Shown piece after piece: positions 3,026 through 63,373 of a DNA stretch of 64,000 nucleotides. Below the pieces are notes generated by a model. The model saw only the letters and a list, made by a program, of their open reading frames with translations. It was not told where the DNA came from and did not search any database. Where the stretch lies: IMG/VR virus record IMGVR_UViG_3300035698_010479, positions 1 through 64,000 of that record. One strand, 5' to 3'. The stretch's first letter is position 1. Each line of letters begins with the position of its first letter. A program made the translations under genes and the position numbers.

Positions 3026-3361
3026 ATGGGGGACGGGGCAGATATGGCATTAGATTATGCCTGGGATGATTGGGAACAACATGAGGAATATATTAATGGT
3101 AATAAATTTAATATAGACCCATACGATGCTGGTATAGTAGACGAGATGGGGGTAGAAATTGGTGATTCTAGACTGCCTGCAAGTTCATCTAAATCTTTAT
3201 ATGGCAAGAAAGGTAAAAGAAAACCATCCAGCTATGCATGTAAACATTGTGGTAAAAAGAATCTTAAATGGTCAGAAGTTGAAGGTAAGTGGCGGCTATT
3301 TGATAAGAAAATACCACATATATGTAAAGAATACAAAAAGGTAGATGATGAAAATACTTAA
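3026..3361 (+). CDS. hypothetical protein with C-terminal CxxC...HxC zinc finger
   Basis: CKHCG...W...WRL...PHIC; AGGAGG RBS. Confidence 0.65.
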   Translation: MGDGADMALDYAWDDWEQHEEYINGNKFNIDPYDAGIVDEMGVEIGDSRLPASSSKSLYGKKGKRKPSSYACKHCGKKNLKWSEVEGKWRLFDKKIPHICKEYKKVDDENT

Positions 3362-34975: not shown

Positions 34976-35154
34976 ATAGTTCTGTGTATAAAACTATGCG
35001 CGTTGGTGGGAAATTAGTACATCTTTCAACTATTCAACTATTTCTACTGACTCTTCTACATCCCTTAGCTATCACGATTCAATGAAATTTGCAAAATTTA
35101 TTAGTTAAATAAGTAAACATATGTTTGCTAACAACAACGAGAGGAATTCTAAAT

Positions 35155-36852
35155 ATGTGTGGTATTATAGGTGTTTTAGCTTTAGGTGAAGCAAAAGATG
35201 ATTTGAGGACTGGTGTTATGAAGTTCTTGTTCACTGAGCTACTCCAGTTAACTGAAGAACGTGGTAAAGATGCTACAGGCGTATCTGCATTATTCGAAGA
35301 TGGAATGTCTTATATCCAAAAAGGTCCAATCACAGCAACTGAATTTATTGGTAATTTGGGTGATGATGAAACGACATATAATAATTTTTTGAGTAATTGC
35401 ACAGACTATCGTAATGTTAACGAGACTGAATTAAAATTATTTATGGGGCATTGTAGAAAAAGTTCAGTTGGTGGTGCTTTTGATAATGTTAACAATCATC
35501 CAATTAAAGTAAATGAGATCGTTGGTGTACATAATGGTACGCTTGAAAATCACAATAAAATATTTAGTAACTTAGGTTGCAAACGTGATGGAGTTGTTGA
35601 TACTGAGGCCATCATGCGCTTGTTAAATCATTATACTGGTGATTGTACAGAACCCTTTACAATGGAAGGTATTGAAGAAGCAGCCAGAAGATTAGAAGGT
35701 GCTTATAGTGTATTAGCTTATAATGCCAATAATCCTTTCCAAGTATGTGTGATGAGAAAAGAAAGACCTTTTGAGATGGCTCTAATACGCGATTTAGGTA
35801 TTATGCTAATTTGCTCAGATAAATCTTTCTTTCTAAAAGCTCTTTACCAGTATAATAAATTTGCTTATTTGTTTAATAACGATTTTGAACCAATCGACAC
35901 AACTGAAGTTGAGGTGTTTACATTGCCGTTGGATCATGTTGGTTTTGTAGATCTTGCAATTGACATAACGGAAGACACAACTATTGCAGATCTACTCACG
36001 TCGAAAGATATTTTTAAAACACCTAAACTGTGGAAAACTCCAGCCAAAACATATGGTAATACTACATATTACGGAAGAGCTGGTAGTAATGCTGGTAAAA
36101 AAAACGACACAACAAGCGCAACAAAGCCAGCAGATACACCAAAAACAGAAGAAGTTAATAAAGAAAACTTCAAAGGTAAAGTATTTTGTAAACGCCTTAA
36201 TGCATATGTTAACCAAGAAAAAATAGATGAATCTAAAGCACAAGGACCTAAAGTAGTTAGCATTAACGGTGGGAAAGTGCAAGATTTAAAACAAGAAGAA
36301 CTATCTGATTTTGTAGAAGTTAAAGATATGAAATTAGATGTTAATAAAACACCGGTGCCTATCATTATGAAAGAAGTAAAAACAGTTGATGAAACTTTGG
36401 CAGAAGCTATGAAAGCAGCTACAGAACATGAAAATTTTAGTACAAGATTTAGTAACAGTAATGAAGTTGCTGATGCCCTTGAGATAAAATCTGTTGATAC
36501 TTTAGACAGTATCCCAGCATTTGCACTTGTAAACAAAGCCAAGGATGTTATATATAAAGAAGCTTTTGTAGATGGTGCTATGTGGTATAAACAAAAAGAA
36601 GTAAATAAACCGGATGAAAAATCATCTGATTCGACGGCTGCCGTTAGAATAGCCAAGCACGTAGTAGGTATATTTGGAACAGTAATCGACCAGTTAGCCG
36701 ATGGAAGAACAGAAGATTATGCTTCTAAAATTCTTGCTGAACTTAAAAAGCGAGACGTTACTGAACTGACTTTAGAAAACGTCAGACGAGTATTTTCAAA
36801 AGGTAATAAGCTATCTTGTAAAGCCCTAACTGCCTTGGAGGATGTAATATAA
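35155..36852 (+). CDS. class II (Ntn) glutamine amidotransferase with long C-terminal extension
   Basis: MCGIIG at ATG 35155 (GAGG upstream), RGKDATG, GHCR, NNHP, VHNGTLEN, VDTE, LEGAYS. Confidence 0.9.
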   Translation: MCGIIGVLALGEAKDDLRTGVMKFLFTELLQLTEERGKDATGVSALFEDGMSYIQKGPITATEFIGNLGDDETTYNNFLSNCTDYRNVNETELKLFMGHCRKSSVGGAFDNVNNHPIKVNEIVGVHNGTLENHNKIFSNLGCKRDGVVDTEAIMRLLNHYTGDCTEPFTMEGIEEAARRLEGAYSVLAYNANNPFQVCVMRKERPFEMALIRDLGIMLICSDKSFFLKALYQYNKFAYLFNNDFEPIDTTEVEVFTLPLDHVGFVDLAIDITEDTTIADLLTSKDIFKTPKLWKTPAKTYGNTTYYGRAGSNAGKKNDTTSATKPADTPKTEEVNKENFKGKVFCKRLNAYVNQEKIDESKAQGPKVVSINGGKVQDLKQEELSDFVEVKDMKLDVNKTPVPIIMKEVKTVDETLAEAMKAATEHENFSTRFSNSNEVADALEIKSVDTLDSIPAFALVNKAKDVIYKEAFVDGAMWYKQKEVNKPDEKSSDSTAAVRIAKHVVGIFGTVIDQLADGRTEDYASKILAELKKRDVTELTLENVRRVFSKGNKLSCKALTALEDVI

Positions 36853-36858
36853 GTTTAT

Positions 36859-38187
36859 ATGCTTAAACCACTAATCATTATACCGTCCGAATCTATGGAT
36901 GGTAATAAAAAACCAGACAGGGATGAAGATGTCTTGTTGAGGATGGCTAAAAGTACAAGGACAAGTGTAGCACTAGATGACAATAGTGTTACACTTACTG
37001 GTACACTTAGTAATAAAAAACTCAACGTATATAAAGCATTTTCTAAAGATTTAATAAAAATACGTGAGTTAGTTTTAAACGACGAGATACAATTTGAAGA
37101 TTCTTCAAGAGTGGCTTTTGTATCTTCTAGGACATATAAAGAATTGGGTGGATTAGGTGATTTCCTTGATCTAAGTAAAATTAAAGCCCCAAAAGTAGAA
37201 CAAAAGAAGGTAGTAAAAGAAGTTATAGATAAGTTACTAATAGGTACAGACCCAGAATTACTACTAATGTTGCAAGGTAAGGTGGTAAATGCTGCTGGAG
37301 TACCAGGATTTAGCAAACAATCAAAGTTTGGGTCTGATGGTGCAATGGCTGAAATGAGACCTGACCCAGCTTTTACTGCAGAAGGCCTTGTTAAAAATCT
37401 ACAAGATATATTACATGATGACGATTTACAAGAAAGAATAGCTTATTATGATTTAGTAAGCTCTTGTTATCATGAAGAAAAAGAAAGAGACTATCCTGTA
37501 GGAACACATATACATATTGATAACCCCACTAAGATTGCAAAATTACCAACAGAACAAAGATACCGTTTATTTGCTGTGACTAATAAAATAATGGATGAGT
37601 TATTAACAATACCTGCAATACGTTTAGATGGCCAAAAAGGTCATAATAGGCGTGCAAAATGTCGTATGAGTACCCATAATGGTTACGGTAACACATATGG
37701 TAAAGGTTATGGATTCTTCGGTGAATGGAGAGAATGTCATGGTAGGTTAGAACACAGAAGTTTATCTGGGTTAGTTTTGATGAACCCTGAAATAGCTACA
37801 GCGGTATTTGGTACGGCGCAGGCTATTGCCGAGGCTGCTTATAACGAAGCTATTCAAAATGGATTAAATAAAGAATTTATTTTACCTAAGGATTTCGATC
37901 ATAAGAGCATATACACAGCTACATTCAAACAATGGGGGGATATACCACTTGCAGAATCTTTAAATTGTACACTGACATCAAAAGAAATGGCTGCTTTGAT
38001 GGATTCTAGTGATAGATCAGTAGTATCCACAGGTTTCATTAAAAAATGGTTAACTAAAATTAGAAAATTAACTACTTATGGTAAGTTTTCTGAACATATC
38101 GAAGCACTTGGAGATATTTTATCTTCAACTGACAAAGTATTAGATAGCTTTGATACAAATATTAAAAATACATGGAAGGATAAATAA
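36859..38187 (+). CDS. phiEco32-like COOH-NH2 ligase type 2, third copy, with N-terminal extension
   Basis: IGTDPELL, GSDG..AEMRP, VGTHIHI, RR...YG..GEWR, LEHRSL. Confidence 0.82.
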   Translation: MLKPLIIIPSESMDGNKKPDRDEDVLLRMAKSTRTSVALDDNSVTLTGTLSNKKLNVYKAFSKDLIKIRELVLNDEIQFEDSSRVAFVSSRTYKELGGLGDFLDLSKIKAPKVEQKKVVKEVIDKLLIGTDPELLLMLQGKVVNAAGVPGFSKQSKFGSDGAMAEMRPDPAFTAEGLVKNLQDILHDDDLQERIAYYDLVSSCYHEEKERDYPVGTHIHIDNPTKIAKLPTEQRYRLFAVTNKIMDELLTIPAIRLDGQKGHNRRAKCRMSTHNGYGNTYGKGYGFFGEWRECHGRLEHRSLSGLVLMNPEIATAVFGTAQAIAEAAYNEAIQNGLNKEFILPKDFDHKSIYTATFKQWGDIPLAESLNCTLTSKEMAALMDSSDRSVVSTGFIKKWLTKIRKLTTYGKFSEHIEALGDILSSTDKVLDSFDTNIKNTWKDK

Positions 38188-38190
38188 CAA

Positions 38191-39282
38191 ATGCAAGATA
38201 CATATATATGGTACTCACCGGCAACTGACGTAACTGGTAAAAAACTTCAAGCGGAGTTGAATGCTTCTGGTGGTACAGCTAAGCCACCAGCTAATAAAAC
38301 TAATGTAATCTGCTGGGGTACAAAAACTGATGCTGATATCGTGATTAACAATAATAAAGTATATAATCACCCAAACAAAATTAGGACGAATAGAAACAAA
38401 GTAAATGCTCTGGCAGTATTAGCAAAAGGTGGTGTTAATGTTGCTACATTTACAGAAAATTTCAAATTGGCCGGTAATAAAGATTTTGCATTCCCCCTCG
38501 TAGCTCGTACTAAATTTCATCAAGGAGGCGCTGGATTTTGGTTGTGCTTAACAGCAGGTATGGTAGCACAAGCAGTAAAAGATGGTGCACAGTACATTCA
38601 AACATTCATTGATATCAAAGATGAATATCGACTTCATGTAGTCGATGGTAAAGTTATCTACGGAGTACGTAAAGTACAAAGAGATAATCATGCTGAGGCT
38701 TTTGTAGAACATTATAATGAACATATTCAAGATAAAGCCGTAAAAGGCAATGTAAATCTTGATAAGGTTACAGTTGACTTTGTACTTGGTAAACTTGCAC
38801 GTAAGCTTGCTACAGGCCCAGATATGGTGATTAGATCTAATACTCGCGGCTGGAAATTTAGTAAAGTAGCTAATGAAAATTTGGACAAAGGCCTTGTAGC
38901 AGAAGCAGTAAAAGCAGTAAAAGCTCTTGGTTTGGATTATGCGGCAGTTGATTGTTGCGTAGATAGTACAGGTAAGGCATTTGTTATTGAATGTAATACT
39001 GGACCAGGTCTCGACGGTACTTCGTTTGAGGCATGGTCTTCTGCACTCAAAACACTGGTAGCACCGCCTAAAGTTGTCAAAAAGGCAGCACCGGTTGAAC
39101 AAGCAGCACCTGCACCCGCATTTGCAAAAGCCAATGTTGGCATCGCTGCAGCTAAGCTTGGGGGTATTAATGCTAAACAACGTCTAAAAGAAAGAGCTGC
39201 TTTTTTAGCTCAGTTAGCAGAAGTAGCAGACGATGATGACGCCGAGTTGTTGGAAAAATTGTTGAAAAAAGCTAATATGTAA
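38191..39282 (+). CDS. ATP-grasp ligase (RimK/YheCD-like)
   Basis: NKVNAL, FPLVAR..HQGGAG, EYRLHV, IRSNTRGW, LGLDYAAVD, IECNTGPG. Confidence 0.88.
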   Translation: MQDTYIWYSPATDVTGKKLQAELNASGGTAKPPANKTNVICWGTKTDADIVINNNKVYNHPNKIRTNRNKVNALAVLAKGGVNVATFTENFKLAGNKDFAFPLVARTKFHQGGAGFWLCLTAGMVAQAVKDGAQYIQTFIDIKDEYRLHVVDGKVIYGVRKVQRDNHAEAFVEHYNEHIQDKAVKGNVNLDKVTVDFVLGKLARKLATGPDMVIRSNTRGWKFSKVANENLDKGLVAEAVKAVKALGLDYAAVDCCVDSTGKAFVIECNTGPGLDGTSFEAWSSALKTLVAPPKVVKKAAPVEQAAPAPAFAKANVGIAAAKLGGINAKQRLKERAAFLAQLAEVADDDDAELLEKLLKKANM

Positions 39283-43531: not shown

Positions 43532-43604
43532 AGGGATGTAACTCAATTGGTAGAGTACTTGGTTTTGAGCCAAGGAGTCGTAGGTTCGAGTCCTACCATC
43601 CCCG
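43532..43604 (+). tRNA. tRNA-Gln(TTG)
   Basis: CTTGG-TTTTGAG-CCAAG anticodon arm; GTAGG-TTCGAGT-CCTAC. Confidence 0.88.
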
Positions 43605-43618
43605 TAGGAAGTAATTAT

Positions 43619-43691
43619 GGTGTCTGAAAGCAACCGGTGCGCTGCTTGGCTGTGACCCAAGTGCAAATGGGTTCGATTCCCATCGGACACA
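43619..43691 (+). tRNA. tRNA-His(GTG)
   Basis: G-1 + GTGTCTG/CGGACAC; CTTGG-CTGTGAC-CCAAG; ATGGG-TTCGATT-CCCAT. Confidence 0.8.
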
Positions 43692-43702
43692 CACAAAGTC
43701 TG

Positions 43703-44078
43703 TATAATTAAGGAGGTAGGCTTAGGAGCAGCCATCGGTACAAGTCCAACTATTTAACGCTAAAACGTTTATAGTGTCTCAGGGCCGACTAAACGAAACT
43801 TAGTACCATTAAATTCGGATGTGAGGGAGCGTATAGCCTTTAAAGAGTGGATCGTGATTCTTGGAATAGAGACGTTAATGGGGAATCCATTACAATACTA
43901 TTCTTCTATACGGATAGTTGTAGAACTGAGGATGAACTCTCAGACGTGACCGTATAAGACGCAAAGGAGTAGTTCACCAGTGACTAGGCTGAGAGTGGTT
44001 GACAACTCGTGCCCATACCTACACTGCGAAGTTAGACTCAACCATGGATTCTTTGGCGTAAAAGCACACTTAATTATA
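43703..44078 (+). ncRNA. RNA containing a split mimic of the 23S rRNA L11-binding domain (H43/H44)
   Basis: AGGAGGTAGGCTTAGGAGCAGCCATC (43711-43736) + CTTTAAAGAGTG (43838-43849) + GCGTAAAAGCACACT (44056-44070), closed by TATAATTA/TAATTATA. Confidence 0.75.
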
Positions 44079-44301
44079 TATTTTTAGAGGTGTCACATAT
44101 AATGTGTAATAAAACAGATTGTAGAATAGAGTGTATTAATTGCGGGTACCCGTACTCTGAAGCAAGATACCCTGATATTTTAGAAAAACCAATGCAGTGT
44201 AATACATCATATGAAGTATTAAACAACTATATAAATAAAATTACAACACGTATAAATAAGATCACAGCAAATAGAAAAACAGTTAATAAATTGGAGTAAT
44301 T

Positions 44302-47494: not shown

Positions 47495-47696
47495 CACGAG
47501 GTGTATATGCGTAGAAATAATGTAAAGAAAACAAAACATAATAAAATCAATCGGATGACTACTGATACTCTTACTGGTTTTATAAAAGAATTAGAAAAAG
47601 CAAATCAAGGTAATAGTAAAGTGTATGCTATGGCTATACAAACATTAGCATTATCCAAAAATAAAATTGTAAAATAAAACATATTAGGTGACCATT

Positions 47697-48350
47697 ATGA
47701 AAATGCTTATTCCTGTATTTTTATTAATATTCTTATTTTGTACACCAGCAATGGCTACTGTAATGAATTATGATGGTTGCCGGTATGATTGTCATGAAGA
47801 AAAAACAACTTACACAAAACGTTGGGATACTGTAAAAGAAATTAAACATACAGACATCGTGAAAGAAATGTTATATATTAATAGAACTTCTACACCAATA
47901 ATTGGTCCTAATGATATATTAAGACAATGTATTAACTATATTGAATACGATAAAATCAAAAATGGTGTCACTGCCGGAACAGTTACTGATTATACACTAA
48001 TAAACGGTAGAGTTGGTAATAAAAGTGGTGAAACCTTTGCTAGATGTGATGATCCTACAAATGAAAAATGGATTAAAAAATGGGTAGAGGAACTAGAAGT
48101 AGACAAAACTGTAACCTGGTCTGAATTTATTACAATACCAAATGAAGATTTATTTACTATAAGTAAGTGGGTATGTTTTCCACTAACTGAATCAGTGATT
48201 ACATATTTTCGTGGTGGTGGTGGGTATGATTATCCACATAACTATACACCACCAATAGGAAGTGCACCAGTACCGGAGCCATCTACAATATTGCTATTAG
48301 GGGTAGGTCTTTTAGGTTTTGCTTCCATAAGTAAATTTAGAAAGAAATAA
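47697..48350 (+). CDS. PEP-CTERM sorting-domain protein
   Basis: Signal peptide ending AMA; C-terminal APVPEPSTILLLGVGLLGFASISKFRKK. Confidence 0.85.
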   Translation: MKMLIPVFLLIFLFCTPAMATVMNYDGCRYDCHEEKTTYTKRWDTVKEIKHTDIVKEMLYINRTSTPIIGPNDILRQCINYIEYDKIKNGVTAGTVTDYTLINGRVGNKSGETFARCDDPTNEKWIKKWVEELEVDKTVTWSEFITIPNEDLFTISKWVCFPLTESVITYFRGGGGYDYPHNYTPPIGSAPVPEPSTILLLGVGLLGFASISKFRKK

Positions 48351-49136: not shown

Positions 49137-49370
49137 ATGAATAATAAGATATTAGATCTACATGGAGTAAAACACGAAGATGTAAAGCAATTAGTAATTA
49201 ACTTTATAGAGAATAACTGGACAATAGAAGAAAGTTTAGTTGTAGTTACAGGACATAGTAGAAAGATGAAAAATATTGTTATAGTAGTACTTAATGAGTA
49301 TAAATTACAGTATATACCTGGGGATATATTTAATGAATTAGCCCCTAAAATTATATTTTGGGTGAGATAA
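49137..49370 (+). CDS. Smr/MutS2-like domain protein
   Basis: ILDLHGV...VVTGHS. Confidence 0.75.
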   Translation: MNNKILDLHGVKHEDVKQLVINFIENNWTIEESLVVVTGHSRKMKNIVIVVLNEYKLQYIPGDIFNELAPKIIFWVR

Positions 49371-50014
49371 TGTTAGTAAAAACTTTTGTACATTTTGTAT
49401 GTTTGCTAGTTGTGATTAGTGTATTATCAATTGCAAAAGAAGTGCGGGCTATACCGATAGTAGAGACAGGGTCTCAGTGGGAATACACAATTCTAAATAA
49501 CGATTTGTGGCCTAACTGGTCATCCGTTAATTACAATTCTTTTGATTGGCAAGGTAATAGTCAGTGGTATACTGGTTCTGCTGCCTTCGGTAATGAATAT
49601 GCTGGCGGATTGGCCTTTAATACTTATTGGCAAGCGAACCAAGATATGGCTTTACAATATAATTTTAATGTAGACGGTATTATATCAGGGCCAATAACAT
49701 TGAACGTAGCTTCTGATAATGGGTTTCTTGTTTTCATCAACGGTACTCAGGTCGCTAAAGAAAATGCAGAAGGATACACCAAATATTGGGAATACACTTT
49801 GGACATATCCAGTTTTTCTGATGTATTTAGATCACAAGGAACCAATATTATACAGGTACTTGCTGAAGATCATGGTGTAGCTACGTTTTTCGATCTTCAA
49901 ATGAATGCTAATGTTTCTGCTGCACCAGTACCTGAACCAGCTACCTTTTTATTACTTGGAGCTGGTTTAGTTGGTCTGTCAACCATACGAAGAAAAAAGG
50001 TTAGTAAAACATAA
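49370..50014 (+). CDS. PEP-CTERM protein with beta-sandwich (PA14/galactose-binding-like) domain
   Basis: Signal peptide; W.TG.AAFG, SDNGFLVFING; C-terminal APVPEPATFLLLGAGLVGLSTIRRKK. Confidence 0.85.
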   Translation: MLVKTFVHFVCLLVVISVLSIAKEVRAIPIVETGSQWEYTILNNDLWPNWSSVNYNSFDWQGNSQWYTGSAAFGNEYAGGLAFNTYWQANQDMALQYNFNVDGIISGPITLNVASDNGFLVFINGTQVAKENAEGYTKYWEYTLDISSFSDVFRSQGTNIIQVLAEDHGVATFFDLQMNANVSAAPVPEPATFLLLGAGLVGLSTIRRKKVSKT

Positions 50015-50442: not shown

Positions 50443-50767
50443 GGGAGTGTGGTGGAACGGTATACACATGGGAGAGCTAGTAGCTCAGTCCCCCTCAAGT
50501 AGAAATACATGAGTAAACTGTGGGTTAATTCGGGAGAGTCTAAGTCGAAAGATAAGGCAATCGCGAGCCAAGCTGGAAATACATTTTCAGAAGGTGTACA
50601 GACTACTGGAGAGCTTGAGTGCTCTTAATAACCAGCTAGAACGCCCACTACCATAGCAGGTAATGCTGATGGTAAAGAGATAGTCGGTGTCTTTTAGAAA
50701 TAAAAGAACAACATGCTTAAAATCCCCCGGCAGTAATGCCGTAAGAGTTCGAATCTCTTCATTCCCA
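50443..50767 (+). tRNA. tRNA-Leu(TAA), intron-containing (exons 50443-50473 and 50716-50767)
   Basis: GGGAGTG/CATTCCC; spliced anticodon arm TGGGA-CTTAAAA-TCCCC; long variable arm; AAGAG-TTCGAAT-CTCTT. Confidence 0.82.
50474..50715 (+). mobile_element. group I intron (242 nt, no ORF) in tRNA-Leu(TAA)
   Basis: P AATTCGGGAG, Q AATCGCGAGC, R GTACAGACTA, S AAGAGATAGTC, P3 GTGGG/CCCAC, terminal G. Confidence 0.85.
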
Positions 50768-53561: not shown

Positions 53562-53708
53562 TGATCTGTAGCTCAGTTGGTAGAGCAGCTGTTTAAAAAA
53601 GCCTGTTTTTGTTTATTCCTCCTTTCTCCTCCTTCGTTGTGGACGGTGTAAAAAACAGATACTTCAATATGGCATAGCGGGTCATGGGTTCGAGTCCCAT
53701 CGGATCAA
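53562..53708 (+). ncRNA. Y-RNA-like element C (tRNA-framed form)
   Basis: TGATCTG/CGGATCA, TAGCTCAGTTGGTAGAGC, ATGGG-TTCGAGT-CCCAT; insert CTGTTTTT-GTTTATTCC...CGGTGTA-AAAAACAG-ATACTTC. Confidence 0.72.
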
Positions 53709-54315: not shown

Positions 54316-55761
54316 ATGTCAAAGTTAAATAGAACAGTTCCGCAAATTAAAACTTTTAATGGCGCAGTAGCAAAACACATTTCTCCAGAAGCAATGCTAA
54401 GACGTTCTATAATGTCTTGCTTGTTATGGGAAAAAGAATTTTATGAGAGTGGTTCAACTATCGCACAACGTATTGAAAATCTCGTACCTCAAGTAGACCC
54501 AATGGTTGTAGCCGACCTCGCTATACTTGCAAGAACAAGGATGAATCTCAGACATGTACCATTGTTGATCATTAATACAATGTTAAAATTCACTGAACAT
54601 AGAAAATATGTCAGAGAAGTTATTAATCATGTTGTTAATCGTCCTGATGAAATGGGTGAACTTCTAACAATGTATTTTGGTGGTGGTACAAAAAATAAAC
54701 CCCTTGCAAATGCATTGAAAAAAGGTCTTGCTGATGTATTCTGTAAATTTAACGAGTACCAGTTGGCCAAGTATAATCGCGATGCGGCTATAAAATTACG
54801 TGATGTTCTATTTCTTACTCACGCAAAACCTGTAGATAACCAACAAGCAGTTCTTTGGAAAAAGCTTATAGGTGGATTTTGTAAAAATTGTGGTCAAAGT
54901 CATTACAATAAAGATACTAAGTGTATCGACGATAATTCAACAACAACCGATTGTTCACAGTATGATGAATTGGTACTGGCTACACCTGACACATGGGAAG
55001 TAGCGTTAAGTTCTGGTGGTGATAAGACCGCTCATTGGACACGTCTTCTGTCTGAAGGAAAGTTGGGCGCTCTGGCACTACTACGTAACTTACGTAATAT
55101 GCAGACAGCTGGTATTGAAAAGGATAAAATCGCAGATGCTTTTCAAAAAACTGACTTGAGTAAAGTACTACCTTATAGATACATTGCTGCAGCTAGATAC
55201 GCACCAAGTCTTGAGGGTGTGCTTGAAGAAGGTATGTTTAGAAGTCTGAAGGGTTATCAAAAAATGGAAGGTCATACTGTGCTATTAATTGACGTTTCCG
55301 GTAGTATGGATTGGGCACTTTCGGATAAATCTGATTTACGTAGGATTGATGCTGCGTGTGGTCTTGCAATGTTACTTCGTGAGACATGTGAAAAAGTAGA
55401 TATTTTTACATTCAGCACAAAACTGGTAGAAGTAGCACCAAGAAGAGGTTTTGCTCTGCGTGATGCTATAGTTGGTAGTCAAAACCATAGCTCTACATAT
55501 CTTGGAAAAGCTATTAAAGCTTTATTTTCAAACGATAGAAGTGAAAGTGCTTTTAAAGGCCGTAATCTTTCACCAAATCGTCTTATTGTTATTTCAGATG
55601 AGCAATCAAATGACAAAGTACCTGACCCAAAATGTGTTAGCTATATGATAAATGTAGCTTCTGCTAAAAACGGTGTTGGTTACGGGGCGTGGAATCATGT
55701 AGATGGCTTTAGTGAAGCAGTTGTACAATGGATTCAAGAATTGGAAAATGATAAAAAATAA
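54316..55761 (+). CDS. rsr: Ro60/TROVE-domain RNA-binding protein with vWA domain
   Basis: LWEKEFYESG, AR..MNLRH.P, RPDE, YQLAKY, PDTWE..LS, ALLRNLRN, LPYRY, DVSGSM (MIDAS), ISDEQ, GFSE. Confidence 0.93.
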   Translation: MSKLNRTVPQIKTFNGAVAKHISPEAMLRRSIMSCLLWEKEFYESGSTIAQRIENLVPQVDPMVVADLAILARTRMNLRHVPLLIINTMLKFTEHRKYVREVINHVVNRPDEMGELLTMYFGGGTKNKPLANALKKGLADVFCKFNEYQLAKYNRDAAIKLRDVLFLTHAKPVDNQQAVLWKKLIGGFCKNCGQSHYNKDTKCIDDNSTTTDCSQYDELVLATPDTWEVALSSGGDKTAHWTRLLSEGKLGALALLRNLRNMQTAGIEKDKIADAFQKTDLSKVLPYRYIAAARYAPSLEGVLEEGMFRSLKGYQKMEGHTVLLIDVSGSMDWALSDKSDLRRIDAACGLAMLLRETCEKVDIFTFSTKLVEVAPRRGFALRDAIVGSQNHSSTYLGKAIKALFSNDRSESAFKGRNLSPNRLIVISDEQSNDKVPDPKCVSYMINVASAKNGVGYGAWNHVDGFSEAVVQWIQELENDKK

Positions 55762-56904: not shown

Positions 56905-57435
56905 ATGGCACTAATTGAAGACGCCATATTGTTTGCAGAAGAAGCTCATAGAGGTATGAAAAGGAAATTTGACGGTACTGCCTATATAAGACATCCTTTA
57001 TCAGTGATGGGTATATTATCTGGTTACTATTCACAACCTGAAGTACTGGCTGCTGGTGTTATACATGATACAGTAGAAGACTGTGAAGATGTTACATTGG
57101 AAGTAATCCATGAACGCTTTGGTGAAATAGTAGCTGGTTATGTATTTTATGTATCTGAGAAGTCAAGAAAAGATGATGGTAACAGGAAAGTTAGAAAAGC
57201 TATAGACTTAATACACTATAGTAAGGGTGGTTCAGTATCACAAGATATAAAACTTGCAGACATGTTAGATAACATTCCTTCAATGGTATTATTTAATCCA
57301 GTTTTTTCAAAAGTATATTTGGATGAGAAAATGCAATTATTAGGAGTATTGACAAAAGGTAATGTGGAATTAAAAAGTTTAGCTTTAAAATTAGTTACAA
57401 ACATGTTCGTACTCATAAATGATATAAAAATATAG
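56905..57435 (+). CDS. stand-alone HD hydrolase, (p)ppGpp hydrolase (SAH/Mesh1)-like
   Basis: AEEAH.G..RK..G..YI.HP, IHDTVED, RFG..VA, IKLAD.LDN. Confidence 0.85.
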   Translation: MALIEDAILFAEEAHRGMKRKFDGTAYIRHPLSVMGILSGYYSQPEVLAAGVIHDTVEDCEDVTLEVIHERFGEIVAGYVFYVSEKSRKDDGNRKVRKAIDLIHYSKGGSVSQDIKLADMLDNIPSMVLFNPVFSKVYLDEKMQLLGVLTKGNVELKSLALKLVTNMFVLINDIKI

Positions 57436-57447
57436 TAATCTAAATAA

Positions 57448-57576
57448 GACCAGTTAGCTCAACGGTAGAGCATTAAGCCACCTTATTAGCTAGTTCCCTA
57501 TGTAAATAGCGGTGTATAGTATGGTTACTTCTCTTATGATAAAAGAAAGATAAAGGTTCGAATCCTTTGCTGGTCA
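57448..57576 (+). ncRNA. Y-RNA-like element F (tRNA-framed form)
   Basis: GACCAGT/GCTGGTC, TAGCTCAACGGTAGAGC, AAAGG-TTCGAAT-CCTTT; insert CCTTATTA-GCTAGTTCC...CGGTGTA-TAGTATGG-TTACTTC. Confidence 0.72.
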
Positions 57577-57740
57577 AATTAAAAACGTTGGGGTTGATGT
57601 GCTAGTCCTCCATGTAAGTTCCATGGTAAACTTACAATAGTACGAAAGTATAAAACTGCAACTCTTTTCAGTTATCAGACTAAACTGTTCGTATTAACTT
57701 AATTGAATAGTAATGTATAGGAGATATATAAAAGAAGAAA

Positions 57741-58460
57741 ATGAAAGAAGAAACTGTAATAGATATTCTAGATATGAATTACCCTTTGCTTGTTAATTTT
57801 AAAGCAGCAGCACAGGGTACCTTTGCCCACAGTAAAGTGCTTTCAGACATACTAGAAAAGATTGGCAACGCTTTAGGTCTTAATAGTCGTTTATTAAAAA
57901 CTATAGGGCTTTATCATGATATAGGAAAAAGTATTACACCAATGCTGTATTCAGAGAACCAACCTGCCGATTTTAACCCTCATGATAAGCTTGAAGCATG
58001 GATATCTTTTGCTCTAGTTGCTGGACATGTAGCACACTCAGTACAAATACTTCTGACTGATCCAAACGTGCCTAAAGAGGTAGTCACTATATGTTCTCAA
58101 CATCATGGAACTACCCTTGCCTTGTACTTCTTTAAAAAGAGTGGAAGTACTGATGAAAATGAATTCAGATATAAAACACAGAGACCACAATCATTTGAAG
58201 CTGCTTTGTTAATGATTTGCGATCATCTAGAAGCTCGTATTAGATCTGAAATTAATAGTGGTAGAATTACCAACCAGGAGGGTATAGAGAATCTCGTTGA
58301 ATTAGTTTTTAATCATTTGGTGGATGATAATCAATTTGATGATGTTGTGGTTCCTAGTTTTAAAACACTTCGTAAACTAAAAATAGTTTTAAAAGAAGAG
58401 TTTTCAGAGCTTTTTAAAGATCATAAACGTATTGATTATACACAAGACACTGAAAAGTAA
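57741..58460 (+). CDS. stand-alone HD phosphodiesterase resembling the PgpH (7TM-HD, c-di-AMP PDE) catalytic domain
   Basis: A.GTF.HS, YHDIGK, ENQ, NPHD, QHHGTT, YFF, FRY..RPQS.EAALLM.CD..EA. Confidence 0.8.
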   Translation: MKEETVIDILDMNYPLLVNFKAAAQGTFAHSKVLSDILEKIGNALGLNSRLLKTIGLYHDIGKSITPMLYSENQPADFNPHDKLEAWISFALVAGHVAHSVQILLTDPNVPKEVVTICSQHHGTTLALYFFKKSGSTDENEFRYKTQRPQSFEAALLMICDHLEARIRSEINSGRITNQEGIENLVELVFNHLVDDNQFDDVVVPSFKTLRKLKIVLKEEFSELFKDHKRIDYTQDTEK

Positions 58461-58609
58461 TTAAGTATCTTCAATATAGTAACAACTCGTTGCCGTTGTA
58501 GAAGAACTACACGAGGATTGTATTTAAACACAATTACGTGGTCAATAAGAGTGCAGCTAGATCTGCCCAAATCTTCTGACTTGTATTAACAGTAGTATAT
58601 TATAACTAA

Positions 58610-58638
58610 TCCTTAGATGCTATGATGCGATAGGAGAA
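58610..58638 (+). promoter_or_regulatory. RBS-sequestering motif, copy 1 (before NMNAT-Nudix)
   Basis: TCCTTAGATGCTATGATGCGATAGGAGAA; TCCT can pair with AGGA. Confidence 0.45.
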
Positions 58639-58643
58639 GTGAA

Positions 58644-59540
58644 ATGAAAGAAAAACAAAATGCAGATGTAGGCGTAGTAATTGGTCGTTTTCAAGTAGAC
58701 GATCTCCACGAAGGTCATCTAAATCTACTTTCTACAGTAGAACAATCACACAGTAGACTTATAATCTTTATAGGTTTATCTTCATGTAAATGTACTTATA
58801 ACAATCCACTTGACTTTGAGTCGAGGCGAGCTATGTTACAAATACATTATCCAAAAGCAACCATCCTTTACATTAAAGACGTACATGACGACCTGTTTTG
58901 GTCTAAAGATCTCGATAATAAAATATCAGGTTTATTAGGTCCTGGTCAGACAGTCTGTCTTTATGGTAGTAGAGATTCATTTATTCCCTATTATCATGGT
59001 AAACTACCAGTAAGAGAGCTTGTTCAAGAAACTTATTTCTCAGGTACGGAGGTTCGTAAACAAGTAGCTATTAGATCCAATTCTTCTAGAGACTTTAGAG
59101 CTGGTGCTATATGGGCGCTAGGTAATCAGTATCCTTCTCCTAATTTTACAATTGATGTCGCTATATTTGATGATAATTTCACTCGAATTCTTCTTGGAAG
59201 GAAAGTGAAAGAAACAAAATATAGACTGATAGGTGGCTTTATTCAAAACTCTGAGAAGATTTCTGATGCAGTCGCAAGAGAAGCACTGGAAGAAACTCAT
59301 CTAGTATTAAATAATATTAAATACATTGATAGCTTCCCTTCAACTGATTGGCGTTACCGTAGCGAAAGAGATAAGATTACCACCATACTTCATACAGCAA
59401 CAATAAAATCAGGTGTGCCTGAACCGGATGATGACATCCATGAACTTCGTTGGTTTGATTTTAACAACGATATACTAGATCTAATTGTCCCCGAACATCT
59501 TGATATGCTAACTGTATTACTAAAGCTGTCAAGAAGTTAA
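58644..59540 (+). CDS. bifunctional NMN adenylyltransferase / Nudix (ADP-ribose pyrophosphatase), NadM-Nudix/NatV-like
   Basis: IGRFQ...HEGH, NPL....R, SGTEVR; Nudix box GGF...E....AV.REALEET. Confidence 0.9.
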   Translation: MKEKQNADVGVVIGRFQVDDLHEGHLNLLSTVEQSHSRLIIFIGLSSCKCTYNNPLDFESRRAMLQIHYPKATILYIKDVHDDLFWSKDLDNKISGLLGPGQTVCLYGSRDSFIPYYHGKLPVRELVQETYFSGTEVRKQVAIRSNSSRDFRAGAIWALGNQYPSPNFTIDVAIFDDNFTRILLGRKVKETKYRLIGGFIQNSEKISDAVAREALEETHLVLNNIKYIDSFPSTDWRYRSERDKITTILHTATIKSGVPEPDDDIHELRWFDFNNDILDLIVPEHLDMLTVLLKLSRS

Positions 59541-59817
59541 CAATGTTATAGGAGGATTATGAAACAAATAAAAATAAAGGAAGTAGTACTACCAATAAAA
59601 GTACCATCAGGTAAATATTGTTGGGAGCATCATATATCTGGCACTTGTAATTATTTTGATAATGAAGGAGGACACTCTTCTTGTGAATTAAAATTTCACT
59701 GCCAAAAAGATACTAAGCAGGGTGTTTTAAAAGATCCAGCATGTGCGGCGTTAGTAGATGTCTTGATTATTGATAATATATCATAAATTATTTGTCTTCA
59801 TCCAAGGTACTTACTAA

Positions 59818-60009
59818 ATGAAAACATACAAAGAAAGAAAAGAAGAAAGAAAAAAGCAGTACGAAAAACATGAGTTCGGTTGGCGTTCCCGTAAGTGTGG
59901 TGCCTGTGATGGTGCCGGTTACTACGACTATAACGGTTCACCTCCTTGTGGTGCCTGTGAAGGTACAGGTAAGGAGAAGTATACAGGACCAAAAATCTCC
60001 ATTCTATGA
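59818..60009 (+). CDS. small DnaJ-type zinc-finger protein
   Basis: CGACDGAG ... CGACEGTG. Confidence 0.65.
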   Translation: MKTYKERKEERKKQYEKHEFGWRSRKCGACDGAGYYDYNGSPPCGACEGTGKEKYTGPKISIL

Positions 60010-60045
60010 CCCGAAAGATGTTATGGACTGGTAAATATTAATTTA

Positions 60046-60072
60046 TTCTTAGATGCGTTGATGCAAGGAGAA
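60046..60072 (+). promoter_or_regulatory. RBS-sequestering motif, copy 2 (before NAMPT)
   Basis: TTCTTAGATGCGTTGATGCAAGGAGAA; TTCTT can pair with AAGGA. Confidence 0.45.
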
Positions 60073-60077
60073 AAATT

Positions 60078-61409
60078 ATGAGTAAGAGAAATGTAGTATT
60101 CACAACAGATAGTTATAAAGTTAGTCACTGGTTGCAGTTTCCTAAAAACGAAGGGTCATATTATTATATAGAATCTCGTGGCGGGGCAGAAACAGTGTTG
60201 TTTTATGGGCTTCAGATGATTATAAAAAAGCTTTTAGATCGTGTTCCAACTAAAGCTGAAGTTGAACGTGCTGCTAAATCATGGACTGAACATGGGGTTA
60301 CTTTTAATAAGAATGGATGGATGGCCCTATCTGAGCTTGGTTATTTCCCTATCGAAATTAAAGCTGTTGAAGAAGGTAAACTGGTTGGGACTAAAGAAGT
60401 ACAAGTAACTATTGAATCCACAGACAAACGGTTTGGTTGGTTACCTGGTTGGTTAGAAACTCGACTTTTACAGTTGTGGTATCCTACTACTGTTGCAACT
60501 AAACAATTTGAATGCAAGAAGATTATTATAAATTATCTAAATAAAACTGGTACTCCAGAAGATGCACCGTTTAAACTTCACTCCTTCGGCTACAGGGGTG
60601 CAAGCTCTGAAGAGTCAGCAGGCGTCGGAGGTTCTGCTGAACTTCTTACATCTATGGGTACAGATACAATTGTAGGAGTCTACACTGCACAGGATTATTA
60701 TAACACTGATGCTATGTTAGGCTTTAGTATTAATGCATCAGAACATAGCACTATAACTGCGTGGGGAAGAGAATTTGAAAAGGATGCATATGAAAATATG
60801 CTTGACCAATTCTTGAAGCCTGGTGCTATACTAGCTTGCGTGTCTGATAGTTATGACCTTAGTAAAGTAATACTTGAGTACTGGGGACGTGAGTTCAAGG
60901 ATAGGATTGTAAAATCTGGTGCTACTTTGGTAGTGCGTCCTGACTCAGGTGATCCTGTAACTATAGTACTTAGATCTTTGGAACAATTACGTTCAAGTTT
61001 TGGTGTAACTACAAACGACAAAGGTTATATGGTACTGCCTAATTGTGTAAGACTTATCCAAGGTGATGGTCTTGATGGGCCTGCAGAAATTGAAGCGATT
61101 CTTGCTGCAATGGAAGCTGTTGGTTGGTCTGCAGATAATATTGCTTTTGGTATGGGAGGTGGTTCTTTACAACAACTAAATCGTGATACATATAAATACG
61201 CTATGAAAATGTCCTCAATACTAGTTGATGGTGAGTGGCGGGATGTATATAAGCAACCTGCTGATGCTGCATGGAAAATTAGCAAGAAGGGGAGATTTGA
61301 TAATTTAAATCTTCCAACCGTATGGAAGGACGGAGTATTCATCCGTGAATATACTTTTGAGGAAGTACGAGCTAACGCTATGGAGGAACTCGAAAAAGTT
61401 TGCAGTTAA
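60078..61409 (+). CDS. nadV: nicotinamide phosphoribosyltransferase
   Basis: TDSYK.SH..Q.P, YIESRG, WYPTTVAT, LH.FG.RG, GTDT, ASEHS, VSDSYD, RPDSG.P, IQGDG, FGMGG..LQ..NRDT, KISKKGR. Confidence 0.93.
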   Translation: MSKRNVVFTTDSYKVSHWLQFPKNEGSYYYIESRGGAETVLFYGLQMIIKKLLDRVPTKAEVERAAKSWTEHGVTFNKNGWMALSELGYFPIEIKAVEEGKLVGTKEVQVTIESTDKRFGWLPGWLETRLLQLWYPTTVATKQFECKKIIINYLNKTGTPEDAPFKLHSFGYRGASSEESAGVGGSAELLTSMGTDTIVGVYTAQDYYNTDAMLGFSINASEHSTITAWGREFEKDAYENMLDQFLKPGAILACVSDSYDLSKVILEYWGREFKDRIVKSGATLVVRPDSGDPVTIVLRSLEQLRSSFGVTTNDKGYMVLPNCVRLIQGDGLDGPAEIEAILAAMEAVGWSADNIAFGMGGGSLQQLNRDTYKYAMKMSSILVDGEWRDVYKQPADAAWKISKKGRFDNLNLPTVWKDGVFIREYTFEEVRANAMEELEKVCS

Positions 61410-61979
61410 ATAATGTGTTGACGATACAAAATATCGTTAATTCAGAGGGCGCAGAAGGAAGTGTAATAAATGACAAGATTATATTGTACTTTGAGTGCCT
61501 GATGGTGTCGCCGAGGAGGTAAGCATTATGTGGGTCTGTCAAACCTTTATCTATGATACCGGCGATGCCGCATCTTATAGGAGTACTTATGGGATTTGCT
61601 GAAATTAAAAAGAAAGAAACACCATTACCACGTTATAAAAATACAGTTGTATGTCATAAATGTCACGCAGAATATAATAAAGATGTTCAATTTGTAAAAG
61701 GTATTACAGTATCTAGTAATACTGGTACTGACCTCGGTGACTTTATACCACTTGCTACAATAAGAATTGGTACTTGTCCTATGTGCTCAACAAGTGAAAA
61801 GATAACTTTATGAAAACAAAGACATCTAAGATATTAGAAACAGTTGATGTAATAGCCGGAAAAAGCTATCATCAGGGCACCTTTGCTAGCATTTCACATA
61901 AGTACCCTAGTGACTTTAGTAGAATGAGTAAAGAAATAAGTGAGCTACGTAAAAAGCTTGTTGATATGCTAGCAGATGA

Positions 61980-62012
<33 letters not shown>

Positions 62013-62162
62013 TCAAGTACTGGTCTCTAGAAGTTGTTGAGTTTAAAGTTAAACCACATAATAAAAGACCAAATTCAATATATAAGGACTCTAAAACATC
62101 AGGTCATATTACTAAATCAGGTGTTGGTATGGTAGGTAAACTAATTAAAAAAGGCTAATATT

Positions 62163-62912
62163 ATGCACTCACCGTTAAAATACTGTACTAAGGGTGTACC
62201 ACTACCAAATTATTTAATTGACGGACCAGAGCGTGTTTTAAACGTTTCTGAAGCTAATGTGGAAGTAGTTTACGGAGGTGATGGTTCAGTACTTCGTGGA
62301 GTACAAGGTATAGTAAAGAACAATGTACCAGACGTTCTAATACTTGGTATTAATACTGGACACGTTGGCTTCTTATCAAACGATATTAGTAAAGAACAAG
62401 CATTAGCTTTCCTTACCAATCCTAATGAGGCCCTTATTGAGAAGCGTAATATGTTACGTATAAGCAATAATGATACTGTATGGTATGCACTTAATGAAAT
62501 AGTAATTCAACCACTAAAAAGAGGACCATTATTTGAAACGCTGCTTAAAGTTGACAATGATGATTTAGTATATAAGGGAGATGGCTTGATAATTTCTACT
62601 CCTTCTGGTAGTACTGCTTATAATCTATCTGCTGGAGGACCTATTATACATCCAAGTACCAACGTGCTTGGTATTACACCTATATGCCCATTTTCTCTCG
62701 CTGCACGGCCTATTGTAGTACCGAATTCTGTAAAACTTCTTGTTAATACTTCTGCCGATGCTGAAATAACTATAGATGGTGTATCAGTGTTCGTTGGAGT
62801 ACTAAAGAATATGTCGATAGATCTTGCAGCATTTACTATAAATTTAGTTAAGTTTGACTCGTTTTTTGAGGCAATACATAATAAACTTGGGTGGAACTAC
62901 TCTATACGGTGA
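62163..62912 (+). CDS. nadK: NAD(+) kinase
   Basis: GGDGSVL, GINTG.VGFL, ALNE, GDGLIISTPSGSTAYNLSAGGP, PICP.SL..RP, IDG. Confidence 0.93.
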   Translation: MHSPLKYCTKGVPLPNYLIDGPERVLNVSEANVEVVYGGDGSVLRGVQGIVKNNVPDVLILGINTGHVGFLSNDISKEQALAFLTNPNEALIEKRNMLRISNNDTVWYALNEIVIQPLKRGPLFETLLKVDNDDLVYKGDGLIISTPSGSTAYNLSAGGPIIHPSTNVLGITPICPFSLAARPIVVPNSVKLLVNTSADAEITIDGVSVFVGVLKNMSIDLAAFTINLVKFDSFFEAIHNKLGWNYSIR

Positions 62913-62917
62913 CTAGT

Positions 62918-63373
62918 ATGATACAACTTATAAACGAAGATATTCTTGGTAACTTAGATACAAATAAACAAAAAACAATTATTCTTCATGGGTGTAATTG
63001 TTTCCACACAATGGGTTCTGGTATTGCTAAATACTTAAGAGCCAAATTTCCAAAGGTTTACACAGTAGATATTACTACTACTAAACGTGGTGATAAATCA
63101 AAGCTTGGTACTTTTAGTACAGCAATCATTGAGGATAGATTTGTAATACTTAATTGTTATACACAATTCAGATATGGTAGAGATAACATCCTGTATGCTA
63201 ACTATGCAGCTATAGAAAAATGTTTTAGACAGGTGGCTTTGCAGTATGATAATTCATGGGAAGTACGGCTTCCAAAAATAGGGTGCGGATTGGCAGGTGG
63301 TGATTGGAATATTGTAGGGCCATTGTTGATGATGCATTTAAACAATCATAGTACTAAAGTTTATTATAAGTAA
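62918..63373 (+). CDS. macro domain protein (ADP-ribose processing, TARG1/Poa1-like)
   Basis: HGCNCFHTMGSGIA, NCYTQ, PKIGCGLAGGDW. Confidence 0.9.
   Translation: MIQLINEDILGNLDTNKQKTIILHGCNCFHTMGSGIAKYLRAKFPKVYTVDITTTKRGDKSKLGTFSTAIIEDRFVILNCYTQFRYGRDNILYANYAAIEKCFRQVALQYDNSWEVRLPKIGCGLAGGDWNIVGPLLMMHLNNHSTKVYYK

Follow-up and report, generated by a model that had tools for sequence, protein, structure and literature searches.

The 64,000-nt stretch of viral DNA analysed here (positions 1 to 64,000 of IMG/VR record IMGVR_UViG_3300035698_010479; the window) carries at positions 43703-44078 of its plus strand a 376-nt element made of three blocks, which stand in the order of 23S ribosomal RNA and correspond approximately to E. 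coli 23S positions 1054-1105, the GTPase-associated centre (GAC). The original prediction for this DNA, that the element is a selected GAC mimic and not rRNA debris, is supported by a family of at least 152 distinct homologous sequences, by covariation of its helices and of the 1082:1086 pair, and by a covariance model of the family that recognizes the true 23S site. We propose, tentatively and with a probability of roughly 45%, that the element is a stable non-coding RNA gene replicating the GAC (the top of helix 42 (H42), H43 and H44; 1051-1108) and may act as a decoy of the ribosomal stalk base; this reading is drawn from sequence comparison.

The element in the window and its match to 23S rRNA

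The window letters were compared with the fetched E. coli rrlH sequence, in which 23S positions 1051-1108 read GCCAGGATGTTGGCTTAGAAGCAGCCATCATTTAAAGAAAGCGTAATAGCTCACTGGT. Block 1 (43711-43736) is identical to 23S 1054-1079 at 23 of 26 bases. Block 2 (43838-43849), CTTTAAAGAGTG, is the counterpart of 1080-1091, and block 3 (44056-44070), GCGTAAAAGCACACT, is the counterpart of 1091-1105. The predicted order of the three blocks was borne out base by base, and the inserts expected at about 100 and 205 nt measured 101 nt (43737-43837) and 206 nt (43850-44055), the second gap being composed of a 201-nt insert and the 5-nt joiner CUUUG.

Read along the plus strand, the element begins with the 5' strand of a closing helix (43703-43712), which corresponds roughly to the top of H42 (about 1046-1055) and is a perfect 10-bp complement of 44069-44078, the 3' strand that runs from C1104 onwards. 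This helix is AT-rich, in agreement with the earlier claim that an AT stem replaces the basal helix. The H43 replica (1056-1079 with the 1067 loop) is placed by 23S identity at 43713-43736 and holds U1060 at 43717, an A for position 1061 at 43718, A1067 at 43724, and G1071 and C1072 at 43728-43729. The A at 1061 (U1061A) had been noted originally, and we take it to be a variant that stabilizes the GAC fold. Expansion 1 (101 nt, 43737-43837, read from the sequence) lies in the 3' strand of H43 between 1079 and 1080. The segment 43838-43849 supplies C1080, U1081, the junction loop 1082-1086 with its tertiary pair U43840:A43844, G1087, A1088, and a GUG leading into expansion 2; C1080 pairs with G43715, which is the compensated 1058-1080 G-C pair that had been predicted (G43715-C43838). 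Expansion 2 (201 nt, 43850-44050) emerges from the 5' strand of H44 and is closed by G43849-C44051 followed by GAUC/GAUU pairs. The family-specific joiner CUUUG (44051-44055, likewise read from the sequence) connects it to the top of H44 with the 1095 loop (44056-44068), which consists of G1091, C1092, GUAAAA with A1095 at 44060, G1099, C1100, A1101, C1102 and A1103.

A covariance model, R1, was built from 20 short members, all of them copies from other phages. In the window it matches 43716-43736 (21.2 bits, E 5e-4) and 43949-44078 (25.4 bits, E 3.5e-5), in the correct order and on the correct strand, and elsewhere in the 64 kb it finds nothing above noise. Positions 44050-44078 are aligned at high posterior probability. 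Two partial matches and no single full-length one are obtained in the window and in two relatives, L326 and L327; in the window the match is split because the model cannot bridge the 101-nt site-1 and 201-nt site-2 inserts. The loop-region motif of the family, GGCUUAGnAGCAGCC, which has one variable position, is present at 43719-43733. The family junction UnUAAnGAGUG with the 1082:1086 pair, followed by an expansion and CUUUGGCGUnnnAGCACAC, is represented by UUUAAAGAGUG (43839-43849) and CUUUGGCGUAAAAGCACAC (44051-44069).

As originally stated, no other rRNA flanks the element: an Rfam scan of the 64-kb window at gathering thresholds detected none and matched only tRNAs and one group I intron. 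The bacterial large subunit (LSU) rRNA model RF02541 gave no match in the window at gathering, nor in the element at E values up to 10. Minimum-free-energy folding was uninformative (z-scores of -0.23 on the plus strand and -1.34 on the minus strand), and a promoter and terminator scan gave no signal above shuffled background.

A phage RNA family and its conserved fold

An exact 18-mer of the 1067 loop retrieved four independent viral contigs with the same architecture, namely H43 and the junction, a variable insert, and then CTTTGGCGTnnnAGCACAC. Scanning viral contigs with the 3' motif gave at least 120 loci; among the matches listed, about 95 also had the 5' motif, located 107-412 nt upstream. 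A second scan used the 5' half alone, a query that E. coli-like rRNA (GAAAG, not GAGUG) does not match, and among the matches listed the 3' block was conserved although it had not been selected for. Family counts are lower bounds from these motif scans, the motifs bias which variants appear, and fractions refer to the matches listed.

R1 found the element in all 100 further loci that had not been used in building it, at 33-112 bits, and it found the true GAC in E. coli 23S (1046-1113) at 51.1 bits (E 3e-12). The Rfam bacterial LSU model aligned its best member, L110, over model positions 1082-1155 at 33 bits, with a threshold of 50. In the R1 alignment 93.8% of cells are paired versus 70.1% in shuffles, and double-sided changes occur at 18 of the 19 pairs. 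The covariation score was 0.593 versus 0.152 for shuffled alignments, and none of 500 shuffles reached it; slid registers of the alignment dropped to about 38-60% paired. In the closing helix seven of the eight pairs have 34-58 compensatory double changes each, and the innermost G-C pair has 6. G1055:C1104 is GC in 88 of the 91 distinct cores on which all position counts were made, with A:U replacements appearing in the set found without the 3' motif.

Eight bases (U1060, U1066, G1071, C1072, A1084, A1085, G1087 and A1088) are invariant in all 91 cores. The last four and the GUG that follows are present in 91/91 even though they lie outside the scan motif that gathered most of the cores. The 1058:1080 pair is GC in 34 cores, UA in 31, AU in 20 and CG in three. 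Position 1082:1086 likewise acts as a Watson-Crick pair (UA 45, CG 30, AU 10), and we take it to be the tertiary pair known from structures of the L11-binding domain. Members found without the 3' motif have rare compensatory changes at 1091:1100 and 1092:1099, and the joiner CTTT[G/A]G hardly varies, even where the 5' half alone had been the query. The bacterial rRNA consensus at 1087-1092 is GAguGC in the LSU alignment to L110; the phage GAGUG is therefore a sequence that rRNA itself carries, and the insert shared by all members lies in the H44 5' strand just before C1092.

The exposed loop bases 1067-1070 and 1095-1097 vary in the family. Both factor-contact adenines had been expected to be kept, which holds for the window (43724 and 44060) and not for the family as a whole: position 1067 is A in 76 cores, G in 12, U in two and C in one, position 1095 is A in 85, G in five and U in one, and 1097 is free. 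The invariant bases are presumably the builders of the tertiary fold (the U1060-A1088 contact, the triples of 1071 and 1072 with H44, and the junction adenines), and the family ends coincide with what we take to be the classical 58-nt uL11-binding fragment of the Draper, Wimberly and Conn structures. Because buried bases are invariant and exposed loops are relaxed, selection for the fold or for uL11-type recognition fits better than contact with EF-G or thiostrepton at A1067 and A1095. We concluded that the family probably retains the tertiary fold of the L11-binding domain.

The element resembles the 23S GAC (H42-H44, 1051-1108, within RF02541) in helix order, in the 1067 and 1095 loops, in the junction with its covarying 1082:1086 pair and in the bases of the fold. 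It differs from it in being a free-standing gene of about 85-560 nt in tRNA arrays and not part of an rRNA, with H42 cut to a plain stem of 7-10 bp. The phage family also has an obligatory expansion in the H44 5' strand, the CUUUG joiner, an A in place of U1101, and more variable exposed loops.

Hosts span many phyla, the host being known for a handful of members, and the GC content of the element ranges from 0.34 to 0.65. Among cultured phages R1 identified Pseudomonas phages pf16 (93.5 bits) and UNO-G1W1 (94.3 bits) and Xanthomonas phage XacN1 (81.7 bits); Aeromonas phage 4_4572 gave a split R1 match, and phages Astolliot, Milchi and XaC1 matched by blastn only. The element is unannotated in pf16, UNO-G1W1, XacN1 and 4_4572. 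In UNO-G1W1 a 35-aa hypothetical protein is annotated over it on the opposite strand (L325:1580-1687, minus), probably a spurious open reading frame (ORF) call; in XacN1 (L323:830-1480) the element begins about 14 nt past a gene annotated as 2'-5' RNA ligase. One contig (L084:3845-4337, minus) carries two copies in tandem, 10 nt apart, at 87.3 and 61.6 bits. Paenibacillus phage Pd_22F (L324, MZ092003.1, about 82.9-85.1 kb) was rejected as a member, as the locus is an essentially complete bacterial 23S gene, not annotated as rRNA, which stems either from host DNA taken up by the phage or from faulty assembly.

The 3' motif occurred 119 times among 185,579 species genomes, 17 of them also with the 5' motif, mostly on tRNA-rich contigs of metagenome-assembled genomes; the remaining matches are about as many as 16 fixed bases would give by chance in 596 Gb. 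The whole window element gave no blastn match in 50,697 phage records because the inserts are clade-specific and only core-based queries work. The homologues are abundant, and no Rfam family covers the element in the gathering scan, in the scan of the window element at E values up to 10, or in scans of members. Full-text literature searches, whose coverage mostly leaves out subscription journals so that a prior report is possible, returned no description of a GAC-mimic RNA, and a word search of large surveys of candidate structured RNAs returned no such RNA. The phage GAC-mimic family is apparently undescribed so far.

Expansion inserts, tRNA arrays and neighbouring genes

The element had been described as rebuilding the GAC from three pieces, which is true in the window and proved to be a trait of its clade, since an insert in H43 (after 1077-1079) is found in only 13 of 152 members (about 9%, the window included), as hairpins of 24-105 nt. 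The H44 insert is present in every member among the matches listed, with a length of 22-431 nt and a median of 134 nt. The smallest member, L293, is about 85 nt long, and its 22-nt H44 insert is a 5-bp hairpin. The closing helix of the H44 insert shows 45-53 double changes per pair. At E values up to 10 the window's inserts matched neither an intron model nor any other Rfam model, and no intron was found anywhere in 43600-44200; the same library does find the group I intron at 50469-50707. The inserts are best regarded as expansion helices and not as removable introns: covariation of their closing helices, an H44 insert as small as a 22-nt hairpin, and the lack of any intron-model match all speak for this.

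Two jumbo-phage relatives of the window, L326 and L327, were found in metagenomes through a RuvB-like protein encoded 2.3 kb upstream of the element (87% and 83% protein identity). Both inserts are present in both relatives. Expansion 2 forms three internal hairpins with compensatory changes among the three phages, and the 3' half of the insert is highly conserved in this clade. By blastn the window inserts showed no similarity to those of other members; aligned locally to E. coli 23S, their best match was a 13-mer beside H95 (score 21), which is at chance level. Of such insert matches to 23S, just one recurs, the SRL-like hairpin of the long forms described next.

In six of the 152 members, long forms of about 370 nt, one and the same place of the H44 expansion holds a look-alike of the sarcin-ricin loop (SRL), the hairpin xAGUAC-NNNN-GGAx, whose stem covaries: L004:2314-2687, L007:6454-6837, L034:7734-8120 (minus), L045:3683-4068 (minus), L066:3419-3813 and L075:8148-8539. 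The same hairpin scan finds 23S H95, and shuffled sequences give 0.55 hits per 152. The H95 12-mer is kept to within one base in two of the six, and two more have two differences. Neither the window element nor most members have this hairpin.

Towards its 3' end, the H44 expansion of many otherwise dissimilar members (e.g., L088, L018, L065, pf16 (L246) at 3140-3165, and UNO-G1W1 (L325)) contains a recurrent module, GGCACCCCG-NNNN-YGGUAAGGCUG. The window has CACC...CUAGGCUG at about 43982-44000, which is possibly related to it.

Two tRNA genes precede the element on the plus strand: tRNA-Gln (UUG) at 43532-43604 (Rfam 64.8 bits; also called by ARAGORN) and a tRNA-His-like gene at 43620-43691 (Rfam tRNA 45.5 bits; anticodon GUG from the alignment), which ends 11 nt before the element. 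The order tRNA-Gln, tRNA-His, element recurs in L326 and L327, in both of which ARAGORN calls tRNA-His at the syntenic place. Further tRNAs follow downstream of the element in the window, all on the plus strand. In the member loci all 860 of 860 tRNA genes lie on the element's strand, and a tRNA lies no more than 40 nt upstream in about one-quarter of members and equally close downstream in roughly as many, gaps as short as 0-12 nt on one or both sides being common. In pf16 and UNO-G1W1 the element occupies an unannotated gap between two tRNAs, and some member loci also contain a transfer-messenger RNA (tmRNA). The adjacent tRNAs have no preferred identity across the family. Clustering of 1,853 neighbouring ORFs revealed no protein common beyond close relatives, and two neighbouring proteins searched in viral contigs matched only their source contig.

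The immediate flanks in the window consist of tRNAs and small ORFs without Pfam matches. The surrounding 20 kb form an accessory island with tRNAs and genes for Ro60/TROVE, RelA/SpoT-type HD_4, NUDIX, NAMPT, NAD kinase and Macro-domain proteins. The run at 56905-63373 comprises HD_4 (56905-57435), a second HD protein, NUDIX, NAMPT/NAPRTase, NAD kinase and a Macro domain, and resembles phage counter-defence modules for NAD+ reconstitution and ADP-ribose removal. The ORF at 54316-55761 encodes a TROVE/Ro60-vWA protein, a phage homologue of Ro60/Rsr. It is flanked by two tRNA-like RNAs (53562-53708 and 57448-57576) with intact acceptor, D and T arms and with 71-77 nt in place of the anticodon arm, an architecture shared with the YrlA (bacterial Y-RNA-like) partners of Ro60. 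The group I intron at 50469-50707 lies in a tRNA-rich region and matches the full-length Rfam model at 65.6 bits. Two ORFs (47688-48350 and 49358-50014) have a PEP-CTERM sorting motif at their end (Pfam E 2e-7 and 9e-7), which is unusual for a phage and hints at an exosortase-bearing host. At 35125-39282 a glutamine amidotransferase, a phiEco32-like COOH-NH2 ligase and an ATP-grasp (RimK-like) protein are encoded together; this trio is a known, poorly understood phage peptide-ligase cassette.

Candidate functions and related RNAs

In the decoy model the element would be transcribed within the phage tRNA array, and the enzymes that trim the flanking tRNAs would release its RNA. The RNA would adopt the compact tertiary structure of the ribosomal domain with both expansion helices pointing away, and would act in trans as a free decoy, most probably taking up host uL11, whose minimal site is copied. 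It could then compete with ribosomes for whatever docks on or attacks the GAC. We favour as its target a GAC-directed host toxin or abortive-infection effector, against which the decoy would keep ribosomes at work during infection. A universal host partner is called for because no dedicated phage protein accompanies the element and it is spread across phyla. A bacterial toxin that ADP-ribosylates H44 at 1095-1098 is known (PMC8661411), as are abortive-infection nucleases acting on rRNA and tRNA (bioRxiv 10.64898/2026.07.14.738597), and phage tRNA arrays serve as counter-defence (PMC10264068). The neighbourhood in the window is rich in genes of host-takeover or counter-defence type (Macro domain, NAMPT/NUDIX, HD_4 and Ro60).

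Several considerations weigh against the decoy. We know of no anti-phage system that specifically targets the GAC. A decoy must contend with 10^4-10^5 ribosomes per cell unless its binding is far tighter, and the attacker would have to be as widespread as the family, which spans phyla. Two differences from rRNA that never vary in the family, A1101 and the H44 three-way junction, could mean that the ligand is non-ribosomal. Site-1 inserts such as that of the window sit in the H43 strand that is presumably contacted by uL11.

The main rival, unlikely in our estimate, is a uL11 sponge: the RNA would remove free or exchangeable uL11, and the resulting L11-poor ribosomes would translate but could not activate RelA, which would blunt the stringent response. 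RelA depends on L11, and rplK (relC) mutants are viable. The boundaries of the element coincide with the minimal uL11 site, the fold-forming bases are invariant while those contacted by factors and drugs are relaxed, and uL11 is conserved across bacteria, which fits the breadth of the family. The window phage also encodes a RelA/SpoT-type HD_4 hydrolase domain; however, this ppGpp-hydrolase-like gene, originally described as nearby, lies 13 kb from the element without linkage in the family. Moreover, uL11 is abundant and mostly ribosome-bound, so titrating it within one lytic cycle would take very abundant RNA that binds uL11 more strongly than the ribosome does, and many carriers are large virulent phages that commonly shut off host synthesis anyway. 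With less confidence than the sponge we consider a miniature GAC in trans that recruits uL11, and perhaps uL10/bL12, and engages GTPases, RelA or ribosome-directed toxins off the ribosome, the long forms adding the SRL look-alike. Still more doubtful is a trap in which the RNA, with or without uL11 and bL12, binds EF-G, EF-Tu, IF2, RF3 or RelA and leads to sequestration or futile GTP hydrolysis, the SRL look-alike of the long forms adding a second ribosomal contact. The covarying SRL-like hairpin at one expansion position in 6/152 members, above the shuffled rate, speaks for such a trap, as does the binding of EF-G by isolated GAC and SRL oligonucleotides, reportedly found by Munishkin and Wool in 1997. 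Yet 16% of cores lack the factor-touching A1067 and 7% lack A1095, four of the six SRL-type members have a G at one or the other position, and the SRL-like tetraloop varies (GAGA, GGGA, AGAA, CAGC). The module is missing from the window element and most members, and the bulged-G motif is a common structural module.

Two further explanations were weighed. That the fold is merely a processing or stability module, the function residing in the variable expansion or in processing of the tRNA array, seems improbable to us. An expansion is always present and reaches 431 nt, the module CACCCCG-NNNN-YGGUAAGGC recurs in many inserts, and in the window clade the insert is highly conserved over its 3' half; against this, the inserts share no sequence family-wide and shrink to a 22-nt hairpin, which leaves the GAC core as the sole universal part, and near-identity to rRNA at about 50 positions across phyla would be needless for a mere scaffold. 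The remaining explanation, a captured or contaminating 23S fragment without function or a mini-gene whose introns splice to give the contiguous 58-mer, is very remote, and the debris version is already contradicted. It is true that some 'phage' records hold real 23S, such as Pd_22F, which scores 2073 bits with the LSU model, and that Acinetobacter and Staphylococcus fragment records match over about 32 nt only, the Acinetobacter ones annotating the stretch as 23S rRNA. The window, however, has no other rRNA, the family-specific invariant changes and the covariation point to selection, and strand and spacing relative to tRNAs are strict. For splicing, the group I intron elsewhere in the window might be cited, but no intron model matches at the inserts at E values up to 10, the closing helices show covariation, and site-2 inserts go down to 22 nt.

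Bacterial mRNA leaders that control the synthesis of ribosomal proteins are a known case of rRNA mimicry. The rplJ (L10) leader RF00557 and its relatives are similar to the element as extra-ribosomal RNAs that imitate the stalk-base region to bind a ribosomal protein. Those leaders are cis-acting bacterial 5' untranslated regions with a loose likeness to rRNA, whereas the phage element is near-identical to rRNA and flanked by tRNAs. RF00557 gave no match in the window element or in L110 at E values up to 10, and no ribosomal-protein gene lies downstream; the element is not a leader, since it is often bracketed by tRNAs on both sides. With 'species 1 and 2' of phage T4 (rnaC and rnaD), phage tmRNAs, and GOLLD and ROOL it shares the character of a stable RNA co-oriented, and probably co-transcribed, with phage tRNAs. 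As relatives rnaC and rnaD were rejected (both motifs are absent and R1 does not match), and no GOLLD, ROOL or tmRNA model matches the element. The pseudo-ToxI of phage phiTE offers a precedent for a phage RNA that neutralizes a host toxin by molecular mimicry (PMC3594212). Pseudo-ToxI mimics the antitoxin repeat of one defence system and has a narrow distribution, whereas the phage element mimics a universal piece of the ribosome.

An independent viral gene that replicates a functional ribosomal domain and occurs in tRNA arrays of phages from many phyla would be a new class of viral non-coding RNA. The view of phage tRNA arrays as islands of supply and counter-defence would extend from tRNAs to a piece of rRNA, and a hidden conflict at the ribosomal stalk base, over toxins, stringent control or GTPase hijacking, is possible. 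The family also provides a natural set of GAC variants that carry expansions at two defined sites and differ at 1061, 1067 and 1095, and for annotation it is an element overlooked in cultured phages, sometimes under a spurious ORF call. If the reading as a GAC in trans is true, the element would be a viral organelle-mimic of RNA, widespread in phages of many bacterial phyla.

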